A DNA stretch of 64,000 bases from Octopus sinensis. Its lineage: Eukaryota. The position numbers and the translations under genes were made by a program. The notes beneath the pieces are model-generated. The model made no database searches. It had not been told where the DNA came from and saw only the letters and a program-made list of their open reading frames with translations. This document shows, in pieces, positions 3,850 through 56,800 of the stretch (position 1 is its first letter; each line of letters starts with the position of its first letter). Where the stretch lies: assembly GCF_006345805.1 (NCBI RefSeq), contig NW_021836170.1, positions 4,480-68,479 of the forward strand, read 5' to 3'.

Positions 3850-4900
3850 GAATTTTTTATTAAAACGGAAAAGCCGAAAAAATAGAGAGAAAGTTAATGA
3901 GACAACGTATGCCTGTTCTCCGTTGTTTCCCTCTTTTTTTTAATTCGAGAGGAAAAGGCTCTCTCAATAACACTTCCAACCGTTTCCGTCCCGTCTTCCA
4001 TCTCTTGAGGGATGGGTTGGTCTAGCTGGAGTCCATTTGCCAATTTGATGGCATATCGTCTCGTCTTTTCGATCTTAGTGATAATGCCATCCCTCTCAGC
4101 AGTAGGGTACCATCCCTCGAACCGGTAGGTAAGCAATGGTTCGACGCATGTTTTATAAACATATAAAAACGTTTCCGGACAAAGCTGGAAGTGAATTATG
4201 CTTCTGAGAATTTGAGCGCATTTCCTTCTCCTTGAGTCGATGTATCTGAAGTAAGAGCCCTTGGATCCAACTTCAACCCCAAGGTATTTCAGGTTCTCCG
4301 TTGCTGTAAACCCATAGAGGTTTCTCGGGGGTTTTCGTTTAGCTCCCTGTTTTGCAATCCAAGTGGCGGTGCACTTTTCTTTTGCGAGCGTCAGTCCTTT
4401 TGAAATGCACCACTCTTCGACTCTTGTCACGTATCCTTTTAATTTCCTCCACGAGATGTCTTTTCTCCACAAAGCATCCGTTATTAGTATGTCGTCCGCG
4501 TAGATCATGAGACGACTGGTAGGATCTTTCAGTTTTGGAATATCAGCAACGTAAATATTAAAAAGCAGAGGGCTCAATACCGAGCCTTGAGGTACCACTC
4601 TTTTAAGATCGACAGATTCCGACAAACGGTTTCCGCTATGACCTCCTCATTGATAAATAGGTCTTCAGCCAATTGACCGTTCTAGACCCGGGTTTGATTT
4701 TGGCGACACTTTCCAAGAGGCCCAGGTGCCATACGCTGTCAAAAGCTTTTGAGACATCGAGGCAGATAGCAATAGTCGCTGTATTGTTAGCAAGACTAAG
4801 CGAGATGACTTTCTCGAGTTCTCCGAAACAATCACCACAGGATCTTTTTCGTCGGAATCCCCACTGCTCCGCTGCAAATGCTTTTTGTTGCAGCTACAAT
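3850..4900 (-). mobile_element. I/Jockey-group non-LTR reverse transcriptase fragment
   Basis: ORF 3894-4625 contains VPQGSVLSPLLFNIYVAD, IYADD and KYLGV. Confidence 0.8.
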
Positions 4901-14437: not shown

Positions 14438-15663
14438 CTATGATGGTCCTAGACAATCAGTACATCTCTCCATGCTATGATGATAGTTTTCCACCTGAAG
14501 ATATATTTCAGAAAAGTTGAACTCCATCCTTAACTTTTCTGAACATTCAGCTACAATTCTTTGTGAGTCGACTTCGCTGTCTATCAAAAATTAATGCAAT
14601 AAATTACCAATAGTTAAATGAGCTGCAATAACAAGCTTAGAGTGTGTAAGGGACCATGCTCGTATATTATGGCATGAACGAACTCCAGAAACGCTGCTGA
14701 GGCATTTCCAAAGTAAGTTATAGTCAACTCCAACGGGGACCGCTAAAATTGAAAAATCAAAATACCTTCCATAAGCACAAAAAATATGTCTCTCATGACT
14801 GTATAAGTGCTGATTACCACCAAAATTGAAAAAATAAAAGTACAAATTGGATCTACGATTTTTAGATTTGGCTAACATCATTTAAAGACAATTACTTTGA
14901 AATATATAATCAGAGCCGCAATAAAAACACCGATACTCTGAATTAAGTCTCCGATTACATGAATGAACGCAGCCGAGAGTCCAAGATGTTTTCCATGGCT
15001 TCTATGTGAATGTTCTTCTCCTGAATATAGCATAATTTACTACCCTGTTGAATCACATCGACTGATTTTGGCAATTCGTGGGAATGTTCGTGGCCGTGAT
15101 GCAACACTGTAACCAATCTAAACACTTTATAAAGTGTACTCTACATTATATTGAAGAATAATCCAGTTGATGCTATAATAACCATAATATTTGGGTTAAT
15201 GTCATATTCGTTTCTCTTAATTCTGATAACAGCAGCGTATACGAATACGACAGTTAAGTTGATAAGTAACATTATGGAAAGTAGTGACGCAAGTACCTCT
15301 GTGAGTTTTAAAAGTATAAATACCTATTCTATACCAACCAAAACTGAACTTTTTGGTAGAAGGTCGTGAGTGGAATACTAATGACAAGTAGCTCACCCCA
15401 ACGCTGATGACATCAACCAGCATATGTGAAGAATCTGTCATGATTGATATACTATTTGAAAGAATTCCACCTATTTTAAGAATCATTGATGTACCTATGA
15501 ATTCAACTAATGTGAACGTAGCAGACAAAATCAAAGCAATCAGAAGTTTCTTTTTCGCAATTCTTGTTTTGTTGTCAATTTCTCGAGGTGGATGGCAAGA
15601 ACAATTGTTCGCCAGTGAAGTTGTTTCTGTAAAAATCATAGAACCAGAATTCAAATTCAGCAT
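14438..15663 (-). CDS. Cation diffusion facilitator zinc transporter (SLC30A2/3/8-like ZnT)
   Basis: KKKLLIALILSATFTLVEFIG|GILSNSISIMTDSSHMLVD..PSTKKFSFGWYR; C-terminal ..WSLT..IAAHL and LQVENY..CTDCLGPS*. Confidence 0.93.
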
Positions 15664-32439: not shown

Positions 32440-35130
32440 TCTTCCAAGTTTCCAAGAAATGCTTTAAGAAAGTTTAGTTTCTTATTCCATTTCTTCAACA
32501 CGTTTTCCGTATGAATAGTAAAGGTTAGAAAGGTGAAATGAAGTGGTTTCAAAAAGTAAATTACAATCTTCTAAATTATTGCATTTTTTCATTTGTAGGA
32601 AATTATTCATCATTTTTTCATCCAGGTACGATGAACAAAATTCTGCAAATAATTGATTAAGTTCCTCACCCGTTCTGTGTGATAGGAAGCTAAGAATGAT
32701 CGCGCTGAAGTCGGACAATCTGAATAATGATACCGTCCTCTTAAAATTTGACACATTCAGATTCCGAGTCACTCTATCTGGTAATAGAAACAGACTGCTG
32801 ACCATCTAGCCTCACGATGTGTTAGCAGTGATTATTTTCGAAGACATAATGAAGTGGTTAAGTGTATTCATCTTCAGTTACAGTGACTCCTCTGAAATCG
32901 GCCATTTTTGGTTCCACGTGTTTTTGTGGTCAATTCGAGAAATGGCCAATTTGAGAAATAAAATCAATCTTTTGTGTAAATTAAATTTTGAATAAGAACA
33001 ACTTTTATCCAGAAAATTTTAAGTAATTAAGCATTATTAATGTTCTTAAAGTAGAATTGGATGCCCATCTGCTTTTTTTGAGTTTTAATGACATTTTCCT
33101 TATAGCGCCTTATGGATGTAATCAATTGAACTTCATGTTCGTTCTCAATGTTTTTTAGGAGGTCGTTTTTAATTTTAGTTAACTTAACCACAATGTCTTA
33201 TTTGTCAATTGAATCATTGGATTCTACTTCATTGGATTCTACTTCAGCTTCTACTTCTTCTTCATTTTTTATATTTTCAATATCCTCAACGTCTTGAAAT
33301 GTATCATTTTCAGAATATTCAAAATTAAGAAATTCTTCGACTTCTAAGGGATCAAAAATGTCAGTTTTTTCTACTGCAATATCTTGAACTTCAACTACAT
33401 GATTCTTTTTGAATGGGTTGCTTAAAATTCCAAAACAATTTGCAATCGTTTTTTCAGACACATCTTCCCAAGCCATTTTTACGAAAATTACAGTATCCTT
33501 TAGAGTTAACTTTTTGTAGGAACTGTATACTGAAATATTTTGCTGTTCCAACAAATCAGTCAAATACATTAACTTGTGTCGAGTAAAATGTGTTTTAAAT
33601 GTTTTTATTATACCCAAATCCACAGGTTGAATAAGACCAGTACTATTTGGAGGAAAAAACAACATTTTTATGTTATCCAAATTTGATGGAACACAATGTG
33701 AAGGACAATTGTCCATGAGAAGTAAAATTTGCTTTTTTTCATTTTTGAGATGGTAATCAAAGTTAGTAAAAATTGTTCCTGTCATCCAAGCCAGTTAGTA
33801 AAAATTGTTCCTGTCATCCAAGCTCGTTTTGAGCTATAATAATCAATGAAACATTTATAGTCATAAGATTTAAAGCATCTTGGCATTTTAGGTTTCGAGA
33901 TCATCACAGGTTTCAATTTATGATTTCCACTCATATTTGAACATAGCATAATAGAAACAAGATCTTTGAAATTTTTATATCCTTGAAATCTGTTTCTACA
34001 AATACTCTTCGAAGGAATCAGCTTGTAATACAATCCCGTTTCGTCCAAGTTATAAATTTGATCGGCATTATAACTCTTTGATATTTCTATGAATTTTTCG
34101 ATAAATAAGTCGACATCTACTGGATCATTAGTTCTCATTTCTCCATGTAACTTGGTCATTCGAAAACCATGCCTCTTTTTGAATTTATGAAGGTATCCAT
34201 TTGAGTTTTTAAAATTATCCAGTTTTAATTCAGACGCGAATCTATCAGCCAAATACTGACATGAAACATCTTCATTTTGATTTTTATAAGTTAAAATCTG
34301 TATTTTTTGATAAAAAGTGAGACGAGTATAATTACCACGAGAATTGTTCGAAGACATAAAATAACTGAAATTTTATTAATTTGCAAATTATATAAAATAT
34401 ATTTTAAAATTTATGGTCAATTTGAGAATTGGCCACTTTCAATGGAAATTCGAATTTTTCTTAAGATAATTTTATAAGTGTGGTCAATTTCAGAGGTGGC
34501 CAATTTCAGAGGAGTCACTGTATATCGAATGTATAGAATTAAACAAAGCAGGAAATTGAAAGGACATTCAATAATGTCGATCCAAAATGTTGAAATCAGA
34601 GTTGATACGTCAATTATGTTTTAAACGAAATTCCAATTCAATAAACCTGACATTTTGTGTATGACAAGAGGGAAAAAGAAATAAATTAATCGAAGTAGCA
34701 ATTACCTTACAAGAGCGTTTTAAGCAAGTTGAAGTGGAGAAATTTCACAAATAAGACCTGCTTGTAAAAGAACTGTCGGTCTTTCGAGAAGCAAAAATAA
34801 AGATTATTCCAATTGTCTTGACATGGGATGGAGTTGTGTCAAAGTTCTTTAAAAGTCACATTGATAAGTTATCCATTGAAAAAGAAACTAGAAATACATC
34901 TAGTCGGTTTTGCTGAATAGGACGCTGGAGAGTATGTTAATTGAACACTCACACGGAGTGAAGATAGACAACAAAGAGTACGTCTCTTCCACCAATCAAC
35001 TTGCGGAGTTGGCATGCCGCAAGGACACTCAGGTGAACATAAACCTTGACACAGAAATGGGAAAAGAAAAGAAGATTGACAAACTTTTTTTAAGCGAAGA
35101 AGGGAAATCATCTGACGATCTGGATTCTTA
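32440..35130 (+). mobile_element. R4-like non-LTR element split by a Tigger insertion
   Basis: Removing 32881-34520 and one TA restores the in-frame RRHNEVVKCIHLQL-YRMYRIKQSRKLKGHSIMSIQNVEIRVDT, followed by NKPDI, IEVAIT, QVEVEKFHK, PIVLTWDG, RTLESML. Confidence 0.85.
32881..34520 (-). mobile_element. Tigger/pogo DNA transposon; transposase frameshifted by a 32-bp internal tandem duplication (33761-33823)
   Basis: TIR CAGTGACTCCTCTGAAAT with TA TSDs. CENP-B-like region, NLDETG, AWMTG, LLMDNCPSH, FFPPNSTGLIQPVDLGII. Confidence 0.95.
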
Positions 35131-37113: not shown

Positions 37114-40041
37114 TAGGGCAACCAAAAGTCATATACAGTCCGACCCCTAAATAGGGCACCAAGTGCCCCAAAATGCGGGGGTGCCCCAAAAACAGGGGTT
37201 TGTTATTTTTTTAAAAATTAAACCATTAATAAACATCAAAAAACATTTTTACTAAAATATTCAGTTATTTTCTTTTTATTTGTAGAGTTTTGTCTGATAT
37301 TGTTCGTCAATTCAGCCGAAAATCAAAAAAATCTCGGAGCATACTTGGTGCAACATTAGAAATTTTTTCTTCTAAATTGTTAAGCAGATCTTTTGTTTTT
37401 GCTACGACATTTTCACTATTTTCGGTTTCTGAATATGTATCATAAACATTTTGTTCATGTCTTCGCATTCTCCATCATTGTTTCGTTAACAACTTGATCT
37501 AAATGTTCATCTGTTAGACAGTTTTTTGTTGCATAAGAATCACGGTTCCTGTCGATTTTCTTCCAACAATTACAATACTTTTAGCATCTATTTTCTCCCA
37601 TCCTTTTGAAATTAGCATCATAACCTGACGCAAATTTAATTTACCAATAGAATGTGTAAAATCGTTTTCGAATCTTGAAAACATAAAAATTCCATTAAGA
37701 AAGAGGAATAATAATCTTTAAAAATCTTGATTATTCCCATATCCAAAGGTTGTAAATAGGGCGTTGTATTTTTCGGCAAAAAAAAAAATTCGATGTTCGA
37801 ACATTCGGCAGTTTTATGGCATCCCGCATTGTCAAGTATTAATAATTTTTTCTGTTGTTTTTGCAAAACGATTCATTTATAAGTGTAAGCCAACTCATAA
37901 AAGTCTTTCCAGTCATCCATGCATTTTGAGAAGATGATACAATAACCCAAAATCTTGAACATCAAAATTTTTTAGACACCGAGGTTTTTTTATATTTTCC
38001 AATAATCAATGGATTAAGTTTTTCCCCGATTAAACTGCAGCATAGAAGAACAGTGAGTCTTTCTTTCCCTTGTTTATAACCAAAACACGGTTCGCCTTGT
38101 TCAACAAATGATTTTGAGGAGTTCTTTTTATAAAAAGCGCAGTTTCATCACAATTAAATATATTCTCAGGTCCATATTTTAATACTTTCTGGTCATATTT
38201 TTCAAAATAATTTTTCACATAAGATAAATCACATGAAGCTTTTCCACCACATATTGACTTGAATTGAAGTTCATGCCGCAATTTAAATCTATCAAGCCAC
38301 CCATTGGAAGCTTTAAAAGAAGTAAATCCAATTTTTGAAGCTGTAACTAAGGCAATTTTTTTCAAAATAGGGTTTGAAATCGGAATTTTATCTACGCGTA
38401 GTCTTTGAAATATTTCAAAGACTTGCTCATCAAATTTATCTTTATCGGCTTTAAATGTGTCATATTCCTCAGAAATAGTATTGCCGTGTTGCAAGAAAGG
38501 TACAATATTTCGTTTTATTCTTGATATTGTTCCTTTACTTGTGTTGTACTTTTTCATTAGTTGCCTCTCAGATAAATTTTTCTTCAAAATTTCTTTAGCA
38601 ATCTTCAATTTAGTTTCGTAATCCATAACCACAACAATAAAAATATAAATTGAAAATAAAACAAAAAATAATTATTTATTATAATTTTATTTATTTTTAA
38701 TTCCTTATAAATGATTTTATGGTGCCCCAAAAATTCCATAATTTTTTATCGATTTTTATTTTTTTTCTGCCAAAATGTACTTTTGGAATAAAGTGCCCCA
38801 AATTGCGGGGGTGCCCCAAAATCCGAGGGTGCCCCACCCCTGGGGTCTGCCCCATTTTGGGGTCGGACTGTAATGCTTATCACAAAATAAGGTCATTTTG
38901 TGTTTGTTTATATTAATTAAATATTTTAATTATATTTTTTAACTATTTAAACACTTATTAATAGGTCATATAAGTCATATTCAATAATAAAGTCATATTA
39001 TAAAAATAAAGTCATATTCAAATTTTTGTATATTTTAATGAATTAGATTAATATTTATTTTTTTTAATATAAATATTTGAATAATAATATTTGAATTATT
39101 TTTTATAATGTGAGATATAATCGGTTTTTTGTTGAGTGAGATAAAGGTTTTTATATGAAAAAAGGTATATTAATAGATGCCTAAATCAAAAAAATCTAAT
39201 GAATTCAAACTCTCTAAAACATTAAATAAATATCCGCACGAATTTACGAGAAGTACTAATGGGGGACTTAATTGCAAGTTCTGTTGTGTTCCGGTAAACT
39301 TTTCAAAAAGTTTTAACGTGGAACAACACAGACAGACGGAAATGCATAAAAAAAGAAGCAAAACACACGACTTGCGTCAATCGAAATTGATTGCAATTCC
39401 AAATTATTTTTGTTTTAAATTGGTTTAACAAAAAAGGTTTCTGGTCCTGAATTTAACAAAAAAGGGAAAATCTTAGATAAAGTAAAAACTGCTTTAGATT
39501 CAATTAATTTGGAAAGAAACCTTGCATTGATAAAATCATGTTATAGTGACATATTAGATGGATTACATCAATGCCAAGAAACTTTTTTACCATTGAGGAT
39601 GCCGTTAAATTTATTAATGTGATAAATTTTGGGGATGATCCATGTGGAATATCTAAATATTTCCGTAAAAGAATAGATAAAAATCGATTAAAAGAAATTT
39701 ATACTGCTAAGATCGATAATTGTTCACCAGAAGTTTGTTCGATATTATGGAAATGTCCAGCAACAACTATTTCCATTGAAAGAAGTTTTTCTATGCTTCA
39801 AAAGATGTTGGAGAAGGATAGAAACTTTAAAAATGATAACATTAAATATTACTTTTCGTTATATTACAATAAATTTGAGTGATTAGTTCTAAATATAAGC
39901 CTTATTAAAACTTTATTAGTACATAAAAATACAAATTTATTAGGTCATATTAAGGGCATATATTTTTTCGTTTAAGGTCATATAAGTCATATTTTATCGG
40001 TCATATTTGAAATTTTTTAGGTCATATTTGCGGTTGCCCTA
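37114..40041 (+). mobile_element. hAT element with CGGBP1-like zinc finger, nested in the Buster element
   Basis: TIR TAGGGCAACC, 8-bp TSD GTGATAAG (37106-13, 40042-49), subterminal GTCATAT repeats. ORFs with CKFC..QHRQTEMH and PATTISIERSFSM (hAT dimerisation-like). Confidence 0.9.
37136..38870 (-). mobile_element. Tigger/pogo transposon nested 22 bp inside the hAT left end
   Basis: TIR CAGTCCGACCCC.AAAT.GGGCA with TA TSDs. HTH plus CENP-B region (FKASNGWLDRFKLRH), NCDETAL, AWMTG, LILDNAGCH, FLPKNTTPYLQPLDMGII; frameshifted. Confidence 0.95.
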
Positions 40042-46567: not shown

Positions 46568-47759
46568 TTAAATTATATTAAAATTATTAATATTATATTT
46601 AATTTTGTAGTTGTCAAATAATTCATTTATTAGCTCTCCAGTGATCACACAGTTATAGTTGTGGGATATTAGTCTTAGAACAAGAATTCCTTCTGATTTT
46701 AAATAATTGATAGTGAATTTCCGAATCGATTCGTCATTATGACTAAAATTATTTTCTTGTATTTTAATATATTTTTTAATGTAGTTAACCATTGATCCTT
46801 TATTAAATAAATTCCAGCACCAAAAGGTTAAATTTACAGAATTTAAAATAAGCATCAGAACCATCCAAAACCAATAAAATGAGAATATTATCTCATTATA
46901 AATGTTTATTGGCAATGTGCACTGAACTTGAAATTTACTATCGACCATTTTACTGCCAAGTTCTCTAATATAAAAATCACAAAAAACAATATGTGGGAAA
47001 TATGCAGAATAATCCGTATGCTTGTTTTGAATAAAACTTTTAAAAATATTCATCCCATAAAATGTAATTTTGCCATTCGAAAATAAAATGTCGGTCAAAT
47101 AAATTTGAAGTACTAAATTAAATATGTAGAGAAATTTTGTTGCAACATAGACATGTGATAAATAATATCCATTGGAATTATCTGTAAAAATTTCAAATAT
47201 TTTTGTTTCACGATTTTCTAATTTTTTGCATGAATTGCGAGTATTTAATATTAGTTCAAAATGTTTAGTTGCAAAATTTAAACAAAATTGGTTGTCTCGA
47301 AAATTATTTACTTTTTCAAACTTAAATGGAATTTCTAGAAGACTGCTAAAACTAATTTTCCCTGCTTTTTGCATAACAGTCCAGAAGAACCAAGGAAGTT
47401 GGTAACAAATTGCACATGCAATTAAAATCCAGATGACCCAGTTGTAATAATTATTTTTTTCAATCAAATACATTTCTGATTCATGGATGCTCTGATTAAT
47501 AGGAACTTTATATTTTTTAGATATCAAGCAAACATCTAAAATATATCCGTGGAAACTACCTAAATTAATATTATTAATAAAAAATACTTTCTAGATGCCT
47601 TGGGCACATGCAAAATATTTCTCCCTTCATTTTTTGATTAGTAATAATCGTAACAAAGAAGAGAATCAAATAAGTAGTGAATGAGTGATTAAGTCGGTCG
47701 ATGAAATCATCTTGCCTTTTAGTTCTAAAAGTATTTTTGAGAACTTCAAGTAAGTCCAT
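46568..47759 (-). CDS. Innexin (invertebrate gap-junction subunit), two exons
   Basis: DDFIDRLNH..IFCMCP..|..YILDVCL (28-nt intron at 47560-47587), YYNWV..LPWFFW, YFPHIVFCDF, QCTLPINIYNEIIF..WFW, SEGILVLRLISHN. Confidence 0.96.
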
Positions 47760-48675: not shown

Positions 48676-50110
48676 ATGAGCTCAGATATAATTCCTCAAG
48701 AAATTACTGTTATTAGTAAGTATCTAATTTAATATCATTTAAACTGTTGATTAAATAATATTTTTAGTTATGAATGGAAAAAACATAGTGGGCAGAAAAA
48801 GCGGTTTGTGTTTCTAATCTAACTCCCAAGGTCTGAGAAGTTTTTCATGTGTTTTTGGCATCGGAAACAAGAAATTTACGACTACAAACGACCCTGTAAG
48901 CGAGGGAAATCCAAAATGGAACGAAGAGGCCACAGTGTATATAAAAATAATTCTAAGCCCAGGCCAATCAAAGTTGACTGCAAAGACGATCTTGTTCTTA
49001 AAATTTGCGACAATTCCAAAAAAATAGGGAAAATTCAGGTCCCATTGACAGATATTTCTGTTGATCCAGTTCGCAGGTTTTCAATTTACATAAAATATAG
49101 TCTAAAAATACTTCAAATCAAACCATCAAAAAATTTTCCAAATTGTTCAGGACAAATAACCTTTAAATGCTGGGTCTCCAAAGTATATCCCCTGGATATC
49201 GCAGATAAATCGATCCGAATAAGATCCATGTCCACTTTTTTGGCCAAAAAACCCAAAATAAGTGCATCCAAATATTCAATTGACGGGTCTTCTGTCGTAA
49301 CTGGTGTAACTTCGATTCCTTCAATTCCACCTATTGTCGAAGATTACACAAAAAATAACCACAAAGACCCACGGAAAGGATCTCAGAAGAATTCATGGAC
49401 AGAAACGATGATTAGTAGTGGAATTGGCGACTCACGACAAGACTGTTCTGACTGTATAAACGACGACCAAGTCCCCCATGTGGAGAAAATTGACCCAAGG
49501 TTCATAAAAATGAACAAAAGACAAAAAATTTCTATTCACGGAAAAAATTTTGGTTCTTCGATCCAGGACATTGCCGACGTTGAGATTGGAGGGATATCAA
49601 TATTGTCAAATGTCCTCTATCATTCTTCTAGTCTTTTATTTGCTACGATAGAAGCTAATTTGCTTGTATAATTACTGTATGCTATAATTACTAGGATTCA
49701 ATTGAGGAAGCTGAAGTTATAATTACTTCTAGAACCAGGGGAAAGGGAACATGTAGTACCTCTCTTTGTGCACAAAATAGGGGGAAAAGTGTTAAGGACA
49801 GAAGAATGTCTCAAAAAATTAAAGATTTTGTGGTATGATTTATTATTAAAATTTTATCAACAATTAGGTTAATGATTCTGTTCACTCAAACCGTACGTTG
49901 AATCCATTTGATGACCAGGCTTCTGTACTAAATGCTAAAATTGACGACTTGAATAAAAAAAATATTGGTTTTTTTAATTATTACGCACTTAAAGATTTAA
50001 TTGCAGAAAATAATTCGCTTAAACAATCTTTTAAAGATTTGAAGGATCGTTATGATCAACTCCTCGTCAAAGTGCTTGTACAATGTCCTGAAATTTTGGA
50101 AGTCCTTTAA
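48676..50110 (+). CDS. Class I Rab11 family-interacting protein (C2 + IPT/TIG + NPF + FIP-RBD)
   Basis: Spliced N-terminus IPQEITVIIMNGKNIVGRKSGLRSFSCVFGIGNKKFTT..GNPKWNEEATVPI (FIP-type C2). C-terminus LKDRYDQLLVKVLVQCPEILEV resembles the FIP-RBD (LEDYIDNLLVRVMEETPSIL). NPF motif near 49900. Confidence 0.82.
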
Positions 50111-51995: not shown

Positions 51996-53159
51996 TCAAA
52001 AACTTAAAGAGTAAATCATAACTCCACTAATTATTAAGAAATCATTTCCCATAAGACATGTCCAAAATAAGGTGATATAAAAGCAGTAACACACGATACA
52101 ACCAAGTTAACTTCATTATTGGTTAGCAGGTCCCATCCAGAAATATGTTCAACATCTTCTCCAGGAGAATCAGTTATTTTTCCATCTTTATTTTTTCCTA
52201 GAAAAACCAAAACAAATTTTAACCAGAAAATTGTAAAATAGATCCCAACAAAGAATCAAGAACTGATCCAACAGTGCCAGCTATACAACAAACAAGTATT
52301 ATCGGCCACTGAGGATCCTCAGCAAGTGTTGAGAACATGTAGTGATATATATATGTAGAAATATAAAATATCACACCGATCACAATCCCTCCTAAAAAAC
52401 TCATAAAAGTCCCGATCAAAGTGACCCCTCCATTTACTCCCGGAGACACAATTTTAAAAGAAATTATCGAATATGTTGTAAATGATGTAAAGGATGATCC
52501 TATTTCTGAAGCCAGGGTATCGGCCAGAGAGCATGACAAAGACCCAAGAAATGCAATTTTTGAATTTGAGGTTAAAAATAATTTCCCAAAATCAATTGCG
52601 GGGTCGTTCAATTGCCCATTTTTTAAAACTCCCAAAATTGAAAGAGCGGGAATTCCGCCATTACAAATTACTTGAATCCAATTTCTTTTTGAGTCTAAAT
52701 AATAAATAAAAGTATATTTCCTGGTTTATTATAAATGCGTCTTTTAGTTGATTTTCGAAATTTTGTTGCTTTGGATGCAATTCCAAAATATATTATTAAA
52801 GTTATGAAACAAATTGGAGAAGAAACATAAACAATTATACCAATAAAAAATGCTATTGTGTTTAAAATATACTTATAATTAAATTATATTTTATATAATA
52901 ATAAACCAGTAATTATCCCAGAACTTGTAAGCGAGGACCTAGACAGTCTTGAGATTATGAGATTAAAAAGAATTGCACAAAAAATGCGAAAAATTGACGG
53001 GGAATTAATATCTAATATTAAAAATGCGTGATTACTTGAAAAAAGTGCTAGACAAAGCCACTGAAAGAATGATACATTAATCGAAATAAGAACTAAAAAA
53101 GCAAATAAATTTTTTCTTATGTTGCCAAACAAGCGCCATGGAAATAAATATGTCAGCAT
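51996..53159 (-). CDS. TMEM19: TMEM19 (DUF92) multi-pass membrane protein
   Basis: SLTSSGIITG, GGIPAL, SLADTLASEIG, VSPGVNGGVTLIG, GSVLDSLLGSILQFSG, HISGWDLLTNNEVNLV. Confidence 0.92.
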
Positions 53160-53329: not shown

Positions 53330-54300
53330 AACCTCAAAGGCATCGGGAAACGCCTTAAAGCTAAAGAGAATCTCGGAATTTTTTGCATGACATATGTCAC
53401 GAGCCTAGCGCTTTACTGAACTTAAGTGGTTACATTTCTGATCGAGTTCTGATCCTGCAAATTACAAGTCAATCAGTCTCCTATATCCTATCTAAAAAAT
53501 CGTGGGAAAAAATGTCGTTAAAAGACAATCAACTTATATTAAAGATAAAAAGTATCTTTTGCAAGACCAATGGAGATTTCGGCGTAACAAAGGCACTGGA
53601 AATTTTTTTCACTTCTAAAGGTTTCTTGCCATTCCCCCGATTGATCCCAATGTGTTCAACTATGGAGGGGATTCCGGCGACTTCCAAAGCTCTCACGATA
53701 AGGTCATTTAGAGCAGCGTGTCGTAGGATACGACCAGAACTGCACCTACACGATAAAGCGTGCAGACCAAAACGACAGATTTTTTGCACCACAGGGGCAG
53801 ACATGTGGCTCAAATATGCGAAATACGAGGCGTAAACAAACCCCAGTCCTAACGGACTCATTGTACAAAAGGTTCCCAATACTTGGTAGTAGAGCGGCAT
53901 TTAAACAGGAACCGCTGTAGGAAAGACAGGCCGTCTTAAAGCAGGCCAAACGATGTTGTTCGAAGGATGCAGGGAAGATCAGTAAGAATGTCCACATGCA
54001 GATAACATGGTGCACTTCTGAGGTAGTAGAGTAATTTGGCCAGGGCGAAAAAGTTATTCGCGAAAAAAAAGCCGACATGGGTGTCCAAAGTTGTAAGGCG
54101 GTTCAAAAAACGAATGAGTGTGAAATTTTTAATACGAAGATCAGTCTTAATAGCGGTTGATAGAATGGAGGATCCGAGAATCAGGAGATCGTTGACATCA
54201 ATCGTGCGCTTTTGACAAGACCAGTGTGGAAGGACGATGATAGATGGTCAAAGGGTTCATTACCAAGGTTGAGGCTAACTAATTTAGATTTTGCGCAGTT
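53330..54300 (-). mobile_element. CRE-clade element 3' fragment
   Basis: PHVCPCGA..LHALSCRCSSGRILRHAALNDLIVRALEVAGIPSIVE; similar to 42750-43080 and 20400-20860. Confidence 0.8.
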
Positions 54301-54899
54301 CTCCAGTTTAATCTTAAGAATTAACTAGGTTTAGAAGATAAAAAACTCTAGTACACGAAACGTCAAAATCCCCTTCAATGACAACCGCCAGCTTCCTGCA
54401 TGTCAGGGAGTTCGTGAGTACTAACTAATCCAAAAAGACGCTCTATTGTTGGCACCTGTCAGCGACGGCAATCCTAGCGGCTTTCGAAATTTTTATGCAT
54501 ATCTTCCGTGCCCGGCGCAGACCGGCAACAGTGGATAACACATCTTTGAAGAGGATGTCACGAACAGCTGAATAAAACAAAGGTGGAGGATTTTGAAAAA
54601 ATTCTGACTTTGAAACACTTAGACCCGTTGGACATTTCCAGATTGCAAGGGCCGCAGATGATAACTTAGTTAAACCGGCACGAGATAAGTGAACATCTCT
54701 CTGGCAGTTGAAGCATTTCCTCGCCTTCTTCCAAGTATTATTGGTCAAGCAAATAAGGCATTGGAATAATTGAAAAGATTCGATATGAGACGGATTTGTA
54801 GTTAAGTGATTGATTAAAAGATGATATAACAAAGAATTATCGAGAAAGAATTGATATGTTAGGAAGCTGACGCTCGACTGCAGAGCCGAGGCTAACAGC

Positions 54900-56800
54900 C
54901 TCATCAGCTTTGGAATTACAGCAGGCTTCAGTCATCCATTGGAAATGACATAATCCTCCCGGCCGTTAGATGCCTCAGATGCAACCAATTTGAACACAAG
55001 TCCCAGGGGTGCACCGAAAAAGTCCGGTATCTGCTCTATGGGGGCGAACATAAACACAAGAACTGACCGAAAACAAAACCCGGTTCCAACGACCCTGCTG
55101 AGAGAACCTGCATAAATTGCAACAATCCTGGATATCTGGTGGATGCCAGTCAGCCAAAGCCAAGAAAGCTGCCATACGGGTTGTAAACAGTCCGCTGCCT
55201 AGAAACCCGGTCCGCTGGGCAAAGGTCGAACAAACAGAATCAGTATGAACGAAGGGGTCCATCCCTGGTCCGTCCAAAGTCGATGTCTGCATCCAGACAC
55301 TGCCAAAACTCAACCCATTCATCAATCCGAAGCCGATGGCTGACATCAGTTCCAGTACCAGAGCTGGTCGTACGACTGTCACCTGCAAGAAGACAATACT
55401 TCGTCGCAAATAGATACCTACTCGGACCAGGACCTGTGCAACAGAGATGCCTTTTTAAAATTCTTTTGCCTTTATGTGGAAGCACTGATAAAACTAGGTG
55501 TAGAACCTGAAATGCTGCAACAGCTCCTATTATAGGGAAGCACACCAACAACATAGCTCATATTAAGATCATCGCTGTGAATGCCCGATCTATCAAGAGA
55601 AGGCACCACGATTTCGTGAGATGGTAAACAGCAGTCGTCCAGACATTATTGTCGCCAACGAGTCCACGCTCAAGGAAGATTACTCATACTAAATCCCCCG
55701 GTACCTGAATCTAAAATGGACTATCTGCTTTATCCTAGAACCGGATGGAACATATTCTCTCTTGATAAACTTCAAGTCCGTAACTTCAATATTATCGAGG
55801 ACACTCTTTGTGAATTCCTATCTCTGAAGGTGAAAACCGAATCTTTCTAGCTGAAAGTCGGAGCCATGTATTGGCAAAACCTCTCTCCCTGGGACAACTT
55901 TGTTTGAGCGTCTGCTCGCATACTGTCGCGGATTTAATAAAAAAGCCCACGGTACGATGACATGGGGAATGGCCATTTACCAATTGAGGTCAAAATTCAC
56001 GCGGACATCGAAAAGTAAGAACTTTAATCCACTCGATACATCCTATCAAAGATCAACTGGCCGCACTACTAAGCTCTGTGAGTGCATTCTAGCACGACTA
56101 CTGTCGCCTGGTCAGTTACGGCTTTGTCCTTGATATCGACATCTCGAGTGAGGCGTAAACGAGATTCATGCAATGCTATCTGAACACTCAAGCAAACAAG
56201 CCACGTACTTGGCAGGGGCAGAAGGTTAATCCAAACACCAAAGTTACAAACTTCCTCAGCGAAAGAAAGAGTTTGTAGTACAAACTCAGACGCAATGTGA
56301 ACTTTATCGCCTGACCCACACTTAAAAAAATAATGTGTGCGATTGGACGAAAACTTGATTACACGATAAAGCTCAACGTCGCAAGCAAATGGCACAACCG
56401 AGGTTGTGCAATCATTCCGGCATGCCTGCTTAGCCGAAGGAGATTCCAGAAATATTTGCAGAACACCTGAACTCCAAGAGGCGTATTCAGGAACACCGCA
56501 AGGTGGCGAGTCGGAACCACTGCTACGCCAATTGTCCTCGGACCATTACTTGATCACCTCCGCAAAAGTGATTCGTACGGTAAGAAACAACGTTCCTGGC
56601 AAGACTGTCTTTGGCAAACCTGAAATGGAGCCACATATCAAAAGTATGGAAAATCTCCAAGGTCCGGATGGTCAAAAAGCCTGCAAAGGCAATGAATCTA
56701 ACTAGCAACTACCGTCCAATAGCCAATAATCTCAAGACTAATGAAAAAAATCATGGCCAAGTGCATTGACTTCTTCGCCGAAGTGAAGAACGTGTTGTTC
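54900..56800 (+). mobile_element. I/Jockey-group LINE 5' part: gag zinc knuckles, APE endonuclease and start of RT, decayed
   Basis: C.QFEHKSQGC, Y(C)LLY(C)GGEHKHKN, CINCNNP; IKIIAVNARSI..PDIIVANEST (APE start). Confidence 0.7.

Follow-up and report, generated by a model that had tools for sequence, protein, structure and literature searches.

What is encoded at positions 48676-50110 of the 64,000-nucleotide stretch of Octopus sinensis DNA considered here (NCBI RefSeq assembly GCF_006345805.1, contig NW_021836170.1, positions 4,480 to 68,479 of the forward strand; hereafter the window), and may its product connect the GTPases Rab11 and Ral? A preliminary description of this DNA proposed a single Rab11-FIP protein with an inserted IPT domain resembling the Ral-binding domain of exocyst Sec5 (EXOC2), and thus a possible bridge between Rab11 and Ral. 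The present analysis indicates, with a probability of roughly 70%, that the locus encodes one protein of 404 residues, a strongly diverged member of a conserved bilaterian family in which an N-terminal C2 domain is followed by one to three Sec5-type IPT domains and a C-terminal helix of the Rab11-FIP type.

The gene, as predicted from sequence, lies on the plus strand (48676-50110) and comprises eight exons with 404 codons and a stop codon. Exons 1 to 4 occupy 48676-48715, 48768-48803, 48831-48936 and 48963-49076, and exons 5 to 8 occupy 49101-49665 (565 nucleotides), 49695-49832, 49868-49967 and 49995-50110, all on the plus strand. The model was assembled from the three forward reading frames, spliced together at GT-AG sites, with the introns placed by eye; the seven introns, all GT-AG, measure 52, 27, 26, 24, 29, 35 and 27 nucleotides. 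The ATG at 48676, with an in-frame TAA directly 5' of it, and the stop codon at 50108-50110 coincide exactly with the limits previously given to the locus, and all of the peptide strings reported for it are present in the spliced translation. Exon 5 encodes, without interruption, the final C2 strands, the linker and then 62 residues from the start of the IPT domain; because this exon is shared by both, C2 and IPT cannot belong to different genes. The end of the IPT domain and the part carrying the NPF motif and the helix are joined to exon 5 via the introns of 29 and 35 nucleotides. Among animals, introns this short have been reported only in myxobolid myxozoans and Dicyema japonicum (PMC13644364; PMC6736024). 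The local DNA is AT-rich, with a GC content of about 30%, and that of the window is about 34%, intermediate between Henneguya (29%) and D. japonicum (36.7%). Given that the family described below occurs in spiralians, a dicyemid source is mildly favoured. Intron 7 (49968-49994, 27 nucleotides) is in frame and free of stop codons; it could be retained, which would add nine residues upstream of the helix core and leave the conclusions unchanged.

The domains originally named, an N-terminal C2, a middle IPT, an NPF motif and a C-terminal helix resembling the Rab11-binding domain (RBD) of FIPs, were found in that order within this one gene. The C2 domain (48676-49185, plus strand; residues 1-127, exons 1-5) is matched by Pfam C2 over residues 9-92 with 28.4 bits (cut-off 22). 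It is followed by a basic, serine-rich linker (49186-49473, plus strand; residues 128-223), in which the segment IRSMSTFLAKKPKISASKYS (49219-49284) aligns with a conserved family motif, LKKxKxKLSHSPxLxRKS. The IPT/TIG domain (49474-49766, plus strand; residues 224-311) is split by the 29-nucleotide intron at 49666-49694, and Pfam TIG/IPT matches residues 224-285 with 17.4 bits in the whole protein and 20.1 bits with the domain alone (cut-off 20.9). In sequence searches of the PDB, which covered 177,635 distinct sequences, the best matches of this middle domain were to the Sec5 Ral-binding domain (1HK6, E = 0.01; 1UAD, E = 0.027), and the human EXOC2 strings given in the preliminary description match the 1UAD_C sequence. 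The NPF motif (49901-49909, plus strand; residues 345-347) is followed by acidic residues (NPFDD) and is a putative EH-domain ligand. The C-terminal helix, the RBD homologue (49967-50107, plus strand; residues 367-404), is split by the candidate intron at 49968-49994; Pfam RBD-FIP (PF09457) matches residues 375-403 with 14.4 bits (cut-off 23.3). A phmmer search of the PDB with the last 68 residues gave Rab11-FIP2 (3TSO, E = 0.12) as the best match, in an alignment that runs from the NPF motif to the C-terminus and pairs the NPF of the window protein with the one that precedes the RBD of human FIP2. These Pfam and PDB matches are each marginal, but together they follow the order that a class I FIP bearing one additional domain would show. 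When the whole spliced protein was compared with 5.8 billion proteins in a word-indexed search, no match at E ≤ 1 was obtained, and the window protein is therefore highly diverged. The Sec5 core domain (PF15469) is absent, by Pfam, from the window protein and from all of the family members described below, and in a tblastn comparison of Lottia Sec5 with the window the IPT was the only match.

Relatives of the window protein were recovered by an exhaustive HMMER search with the exon 5 translation as the query, which returned mostly giant proteins of multiple IPT domains, plus P0005 (957 residues) and P0008; further members came from two follow-up searches and a cluster look-up. P0005 carries, by Pfam, a C2 domain, three TIG domains and a C-terminal RBD-FIP match. 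The family includes sequences from annelids (Paralvinella palmiformis KAK2146876.1 and Owenia fusiformis CAH1796622.1), bivalves (Crassostrea virginica LOC111128182, Mizuhopecten yessoensis LOC110454211, Magallana gigas A0A8W8HN06 and Saccostrea cucullata LOC134251513) and a hemichordate (Glandiceps talaboti LOC144443651), as well as several unlabelled sequences from sequencing-run assemblies and metagenomes. The IPT is present in three copies in P0005 and the Paralvinella protein, in two copies in P0016 and P0017, and in a single copy in Owenia, the bivalves, Glandiceps and the window protein. At 444-472 residues, the proteins of the bivalves and the hemichordate match the window protein in size and layout, and the scallop orthologue has two NPF motifs between its IPT and helix. 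P0005 is encoded by one uninterrupted, intronless open reading frame (ORF) of 2874 nucleotides on genome contigs at each of two loci (L001 2051-4924, GCA_029979725.1; L002 238-3111, GCA_013332715.1), and P0017 is likewise a single ORF on a 2.5-kb contig of a sequencing-run assembly. These single ORFs provide independent evidence that the three modules make up one protein, so that the proposal of a single gene at the locus is borne out by orthologues as well as by the shared exon 5 and the short introns that join the remainder.

Members from annelids, from bivalves and from a hemichordate all have the modules in collinear order, which implies that the architecture predates the protostome-deuterostome split and does not sit with the idea that the IPT was inserted in one lineage. 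In the databases, members are named "hypothetical", "uncharacterized" or "C2 domain-containing", and two UniRef entries, P0015 (Paralvinella) and P0018 (Owenia), both lacking the Sec5 core domain, are named "Exocyst complex component 2". This name appears to have been transferred from IPT similarity alone; despite it, the family proteins are not EXOC2 orthologues, because the Sec5 core domain is absent. As RBD-FIP stays below its cut-off, the databases show only C2 and TIG, and the kinship with FIPs is unannotated. In the literature searched, no paper was found that links a Rab11-FIP with an IPT/TIG domain or that describes a C2-IPT-RBD family. The locus is less unique for this reason: the architecture is already in the databases as unnamed predicted proteins, whereas its link to FIPs is neither annotated there nor treated in any paper found.

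In the oyster Magallana gigas, an isoform of 266 residues (P0041, A0A8W8HMY6) skips the whole IPT region present in P0032/P0038 (A0A8W8HN06) and joins the linker after C2 straight to the segment before the RBD, yielding a plain C2-RBD protein. The oyster IPT thus looks like an alternatively spliced cassette, and this isoform suggests that in these animals the IPT may be an optional module on a possible class I FIP orthologue. Separately, P0001-P0004, P0006 and P0007 were rejected as orthologues, being large multi-IPT proteins with scores that are sums over repeats. P0004, P0009, P0010 and P0014 consist of many IPT repeats with a G-x-x-[LF]-G...D-I-x-x-V-x-I-x-G motif, and these repeats reach scores against the window IPT that equal those of true family members; P0004 and P0010 also have a hydrophobic, apparently membrane-spanning stretch near the C-terminus.

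Membership of the window protein in this family was assessed with profiles built without it, with 2,000 shuffles of the window protein as the control. The C2 profile scored 83.8 bits over residues 2-126 (E = 4e-28; shuffle maximum 10.1), the IPT profile 35.2 bits over profile positions 1-83 of 90 (shuffle maximum 8.7) and the RBD/helix profile 24.0 bits over residues 367-403 (shuffle maximum 9.0), all of which is far beyond chance. The full-length family alignment is collinear across all exon junctions and free of gaps in its C2 part, which validates introns 1-4. The window protein shares with the family the collinear C2, the basic motif after C2, a stretch of 22 residues from the first Pro of the IPT to the equivalent of Sec5 Arg27 (20 in Sec5), and a helix that ends in C-P-x-[IVA]-L. 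Within this ending, Cys397-Pro398 (50084-50089; VQCPEIL) is invariant in the family, whereas in mammalian FIPs the Pro follows Thr, Ser or Asn. The window protein is a fast-evolved member of the C2-IPT-RBD family. Recent capture of the IPT from the organism's own Sec5 was considered and rejected, given the longer segment of the family and the scores of the window IPT, 35 bits with the family profile versus 23 bits with a Sec5 profile.

The IPT of the family is Sec5-type. A profile made from 14 IPT copies of the family matched the Sec5 Ral-binding domain in the PDB over its full length (98 bits, E = 1.8e-27), followed by plexin-A1 (70 bits, in two stretches) and then Met. Identity between family IPTs and Sec5 is 43-50%, as between Lottia Sec5 and P0005 (49% over the IPT). 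In the AlphaFold model of the scallop orthologue, the predicted local distance difference test (pLDDT) score is about 90 for C2, about 70-86 for the IPT sandwich and 74-90 for a C-terminal helix of 40 residues, with disordered linkers; a Foldseek search of the PDB with this model gave 1UAD_C, from the RalA-Sec5 complex, as the first match other than C2 domains (target-normalised template modelling score 0.75, 43% identity). The family IPT therefore resembles that of Sec5/EXOC2 (1UAD, 1HK6) in score, in fold and in the two Ral-contact positions considered below, which are mostly kept, and it differs from it in being part of proteins without the PF15469 core and in the two extra residues between the first Pro and the Arg27 position. 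For the window IPT alone the case is different. With a small Sec5 profile, IPTs of the family taken one at a time reach 75-90 bits and the window IPT 23 bits, and in pairwise comparisons the window IPT scores 16-17 bits with Sec5, 15-28 with family IPTs and 23-27 with IPT repeats of unrelated multi-IPT proteins. Its likeness to Sec5 would thus follow from its family membership and could not be demonstrated from the domain alone; the earlier statement that the middle domain is Sec5-like is upheld by its best PDB match and by the family profile, although the window copy by itself is no closer to Sec5 than to unrelated repeats.

Two Sec5 residues are informative with regard to Ral. Arg27 is said to have been found by Fukai and colleagues, in 2003, to be required for Ral binding. 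Thr11 hydrogen-bonds with Tyr36 of RalA, and the T11A exchange strongly reduces binding (bioRxiv 10.1101/2025.08.28.672893). In most of the annelid-type, hemichordate and unlabelled copies, the Thr11 position holds Ser or Thr and the Arg27 position holds Arg. Oysters have Thr and Glu at these positions, the scallop has Leu and Val, and the window protein has Glu227 (49483-49485) and His245 (49537-49539). Ral-GTP binding is a plausible and reasonable hypothesis for the annelid and hemichordate copies, because the family IPT is highly conserved relative to Sec5, including these two Ral-contact residues. Canonical Ral binding appears doubtful for the bivalve proteins and is unlikely for the window copy, in which Glu227 and His245 replace two residues used by Sec5 to bind Ral.

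As for the C-terminal helix, a family profile of 53 columns was swamped in the PDB by generic coiled coils and was replaced by a 26-residue core profile, for which ranks 1-9 are all nine distinct Rab11-FIP1, FIP2 and FIP3 RBD sequences (E = 0.03-0.44). Where FIPs have the contact motif YID, most family members have Y-[IML]-[DEQ] and the window protein has RYD (residues 385-387, 50048-50056), so that the motif is not preserved in it; the Ile position is occupied by Tyr, changed but still hydrophobic, and the preceding Tyr is replaced by Arg. Exchange of the YID Ile for Glu abolishes Rab11 binding in FIP1C, FIP2, FIP3 and FIP5 (PMC9282008). The NPF motifs of FIP2 bind EHD1-3, Reps1 and Eps15 (PMC5391185), and the NPF of the window protein, with its acidic residues, resembles these EH-domain ligands. 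The family shares with class I FIPs (FIP1/RCP, FIP2, FIP5/Rip11 and Drosophila dRip11) a C2 domain at the extreme N-terminus and long disordered linkers between modules. A putative Rab11-binding motif of about 25 residues likewise forms the extreme C-terminal end of a helix, and shortly before it lies an NPF, in the manner of FIP2. It differs from them in the one to three Sec5-type IPTs between C2 and RBD, in the Cys-Pro of an RBD that stays below the RBD-FIP cut-off and, for the window protein, in RYD.

Several observations weigh against this placement of the window protein. RYD puts Tyr at the essential Ile and Arg at the Tyr; Pfam RBD-FIP falls below the cut-off of 23.3 in every family member (13-18 bits); and the matches of the core profile to FIPs in the PDB reach E-values of 0.03-0.44 only. 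The C2 domain scores 36-41 bits against provisional N-terminal sequences of FIP2 and FIP5, about the same as the 36.7 bits of the best unrelated C2, which makes a C2 specifically of the class I FIP type no more than a lead; among the PDB sequences, no FIP C2 was present for comparison. Finally, the gene model is a prediction from genomic sequence, and intron 7 may be retained.

Gene structure, domain identities, placement in the C2-IPT-RBD family and the states of the key residues are shown by the analysis; in the following model for how such proteins may act, we infer every binding activity by analogy. Class I FIP C2 domains bind phosphatidylinositol 3,4,5-trisphosphate, PI(3,4,5)P3, and phosphatidic acid. 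If the family works as class I Rab11-FIPs do, its C-terminal helix would dimerise and dock on recycling vesicles carrying Rab11-GTP, its C2 domain would attach to acidic phospholipids in the target membrane, and its NPF motif may recruit EH-domain proteins of the EHD, Reps or Eps15 type. The IPT would provide a further protein-binding surface, which across the family most probably serves as a site for Ral-GTP and shares its ancestry with that of exocyst Sec5; in the window protein, this surface may support a modified mode of binding to a co-evolved Ral, or may bind another partner. In mammals, Rab11 recycling vesicles are similarly coupled to Ral-regulated exocytosis by the Rab11-FIP2-Reps1-RalBP1-Ral link, with RalBP1 as the step before Ral, and Rab11-Sec15 and Ral-Sec5 contacts are made within the exocyst. 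However, in the mammalian link the coupling is achieved by separate proteins, whereas in the family potential Ral- and Rab11-binding modules reside on one polypeptide.

A more far-reaching possibility, offered tentatively and as a good deal less probable than family membership itself, is that these proteins are ancient bilaterian Rab11 effectors in which one to three Sec5-derived Ral-binding domains allow a single polypeptide to detect the coincidence of Rab11-GTP and Ral-GTP on vesicles of exocytosis or recycling, acting in parallel to the exocyst or competing with it. Two reasons would then account for the family having been overlooked, namely that no member is known from vertebrates or Drosophila and that the RBD lies below the Pfam cut-off, and the window gene would be a derived member with a remodelled IPT interface in a reduced parasite genome. 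The exocyst-dependent delivery of recycling vesicles receives its two main GTPase inputs from Rab11 and Ral. To our knowledge, in the model organisms studied their coupling proceeds only via multi-protein assemblies (Rab11-Sec15, Ral-Sec5/Exo84 and FIP2-Reps1-RalBP1). If one conserved protein carried a Rab11-binding helix together with Sec5-type Ral-binding domains, it would link both GTPase systems directly and would also naturally compete with Sec5 for Ral. Further, the Sec5 Ral-binding IPT is not exclusive to the exocyst, which explains the misnaming of family members as "Exocyst complex component 2", and the natural variants at Thr11 and Arg27 in the annelid, bivalve and window copies may serve the dissection of Ral recognition. 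The family is thus a previously undescribed variant of a known effector group and not unique to the window genome, for which the gene is one more fast-evolving trafficking adaptor.

That the window protein itself forms the bridge, binding Ral-GTP in the manner of Sec5 through its IPT and Rab11-GTP through its RBD, is unlikely. The identity of about 43-50% that family IPTs retain with Sec5 across bilaterians argues for a shared, constrained ligand, most annelid and hemichordate copies retain Ser or Thr in place of Thr11 as well as the equivalent of Arg27, and the window IPT belongs to that domain family over its full length. However, it has Glu227 where T11A in Sec5 greatly weakens RalA binding and His245 where Arg is reportedly needed, and its score against Sec5 is 17-23 bits, no closer than to other IPT repeats. 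The single-IPT bivalve orthologues, with Glu or Val, also lack Arg27, and the scallop has Leu at the Thr11 position. With RYD in place of YID in addition, the bridge first envisaged for this copy is weak.

Somewhat less probable again is a C2-IPT scaffold that does not bind Rab11, in which the helix would be a generic coiled coil and its likeness to FIPs would be convergent or decayed. Such a reading would accommodate the sub-threshold RBD-FIP scores of all members, the preference of the longer helix profile for generic coiled coils over FIPs, and RYD in the window protein. It does not readily account for the finding that the nine best of the 177,635 PDB sequences for the core profile are all FIP RBDs, nor for the position of the motif at the extreme C-terminus, as in all FIPs, with a common pattern of Y-[IML]-[DEQ]-x-[LIV]-[LV]...P-x-[IVA]-L. 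In addition, the NPF lies directly upstream, matching FIP2, and class I FIPs are defined by just such a layout, with C2 at the N-terminus and the RBD at the C-terminus. An artefact of the gene model, in which two adjacent genes or a pseudogene were wrongly joined, is very improbable: although the introns were placed by eye and an AATAAA lies inside exon 7, C2 and IPT are on one exon, the 29 and 35 nucleotides between the remaining exons leave no room for a terminator and a promoter, the frame is intact over 404 codons, and the order of modules is the same in single ORFs of at least eight other animals.

The FIP-like gene lies head-to-head with an innexin gene (46568-47759, minus strand; PF00876, 157 bits), which consists of two ORF blocks with a gap of about 46 nucleotides; an AT-rich spacer of about 900 nucleotides separates the two genes. 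Other genes represented in the window include exons of a cation-efflux transporter of the ZnT type (15217-15663, minus strand) and of a DUF92/TMEM19-like membrane protein (52219-52635, minus strand). Mobile-element remnants comprise pogo/Tigger-type transposases (DDE_1 and HTH_Tnp_Tc5) at 33198-34357 and 38030-38632, both on the minus strand, the former as two overlapping ORFs that are probably frameshifted, and a reverse-transcriptase fragment resembling that of long interspersed nuclear elements (3894-4625, minus strand; RVT_1, 61 bits). A GC-rich stretch at 54001-56000 (44% versus about 32% elsewhere) contains minus-strand ORFs of 144-153 residues.

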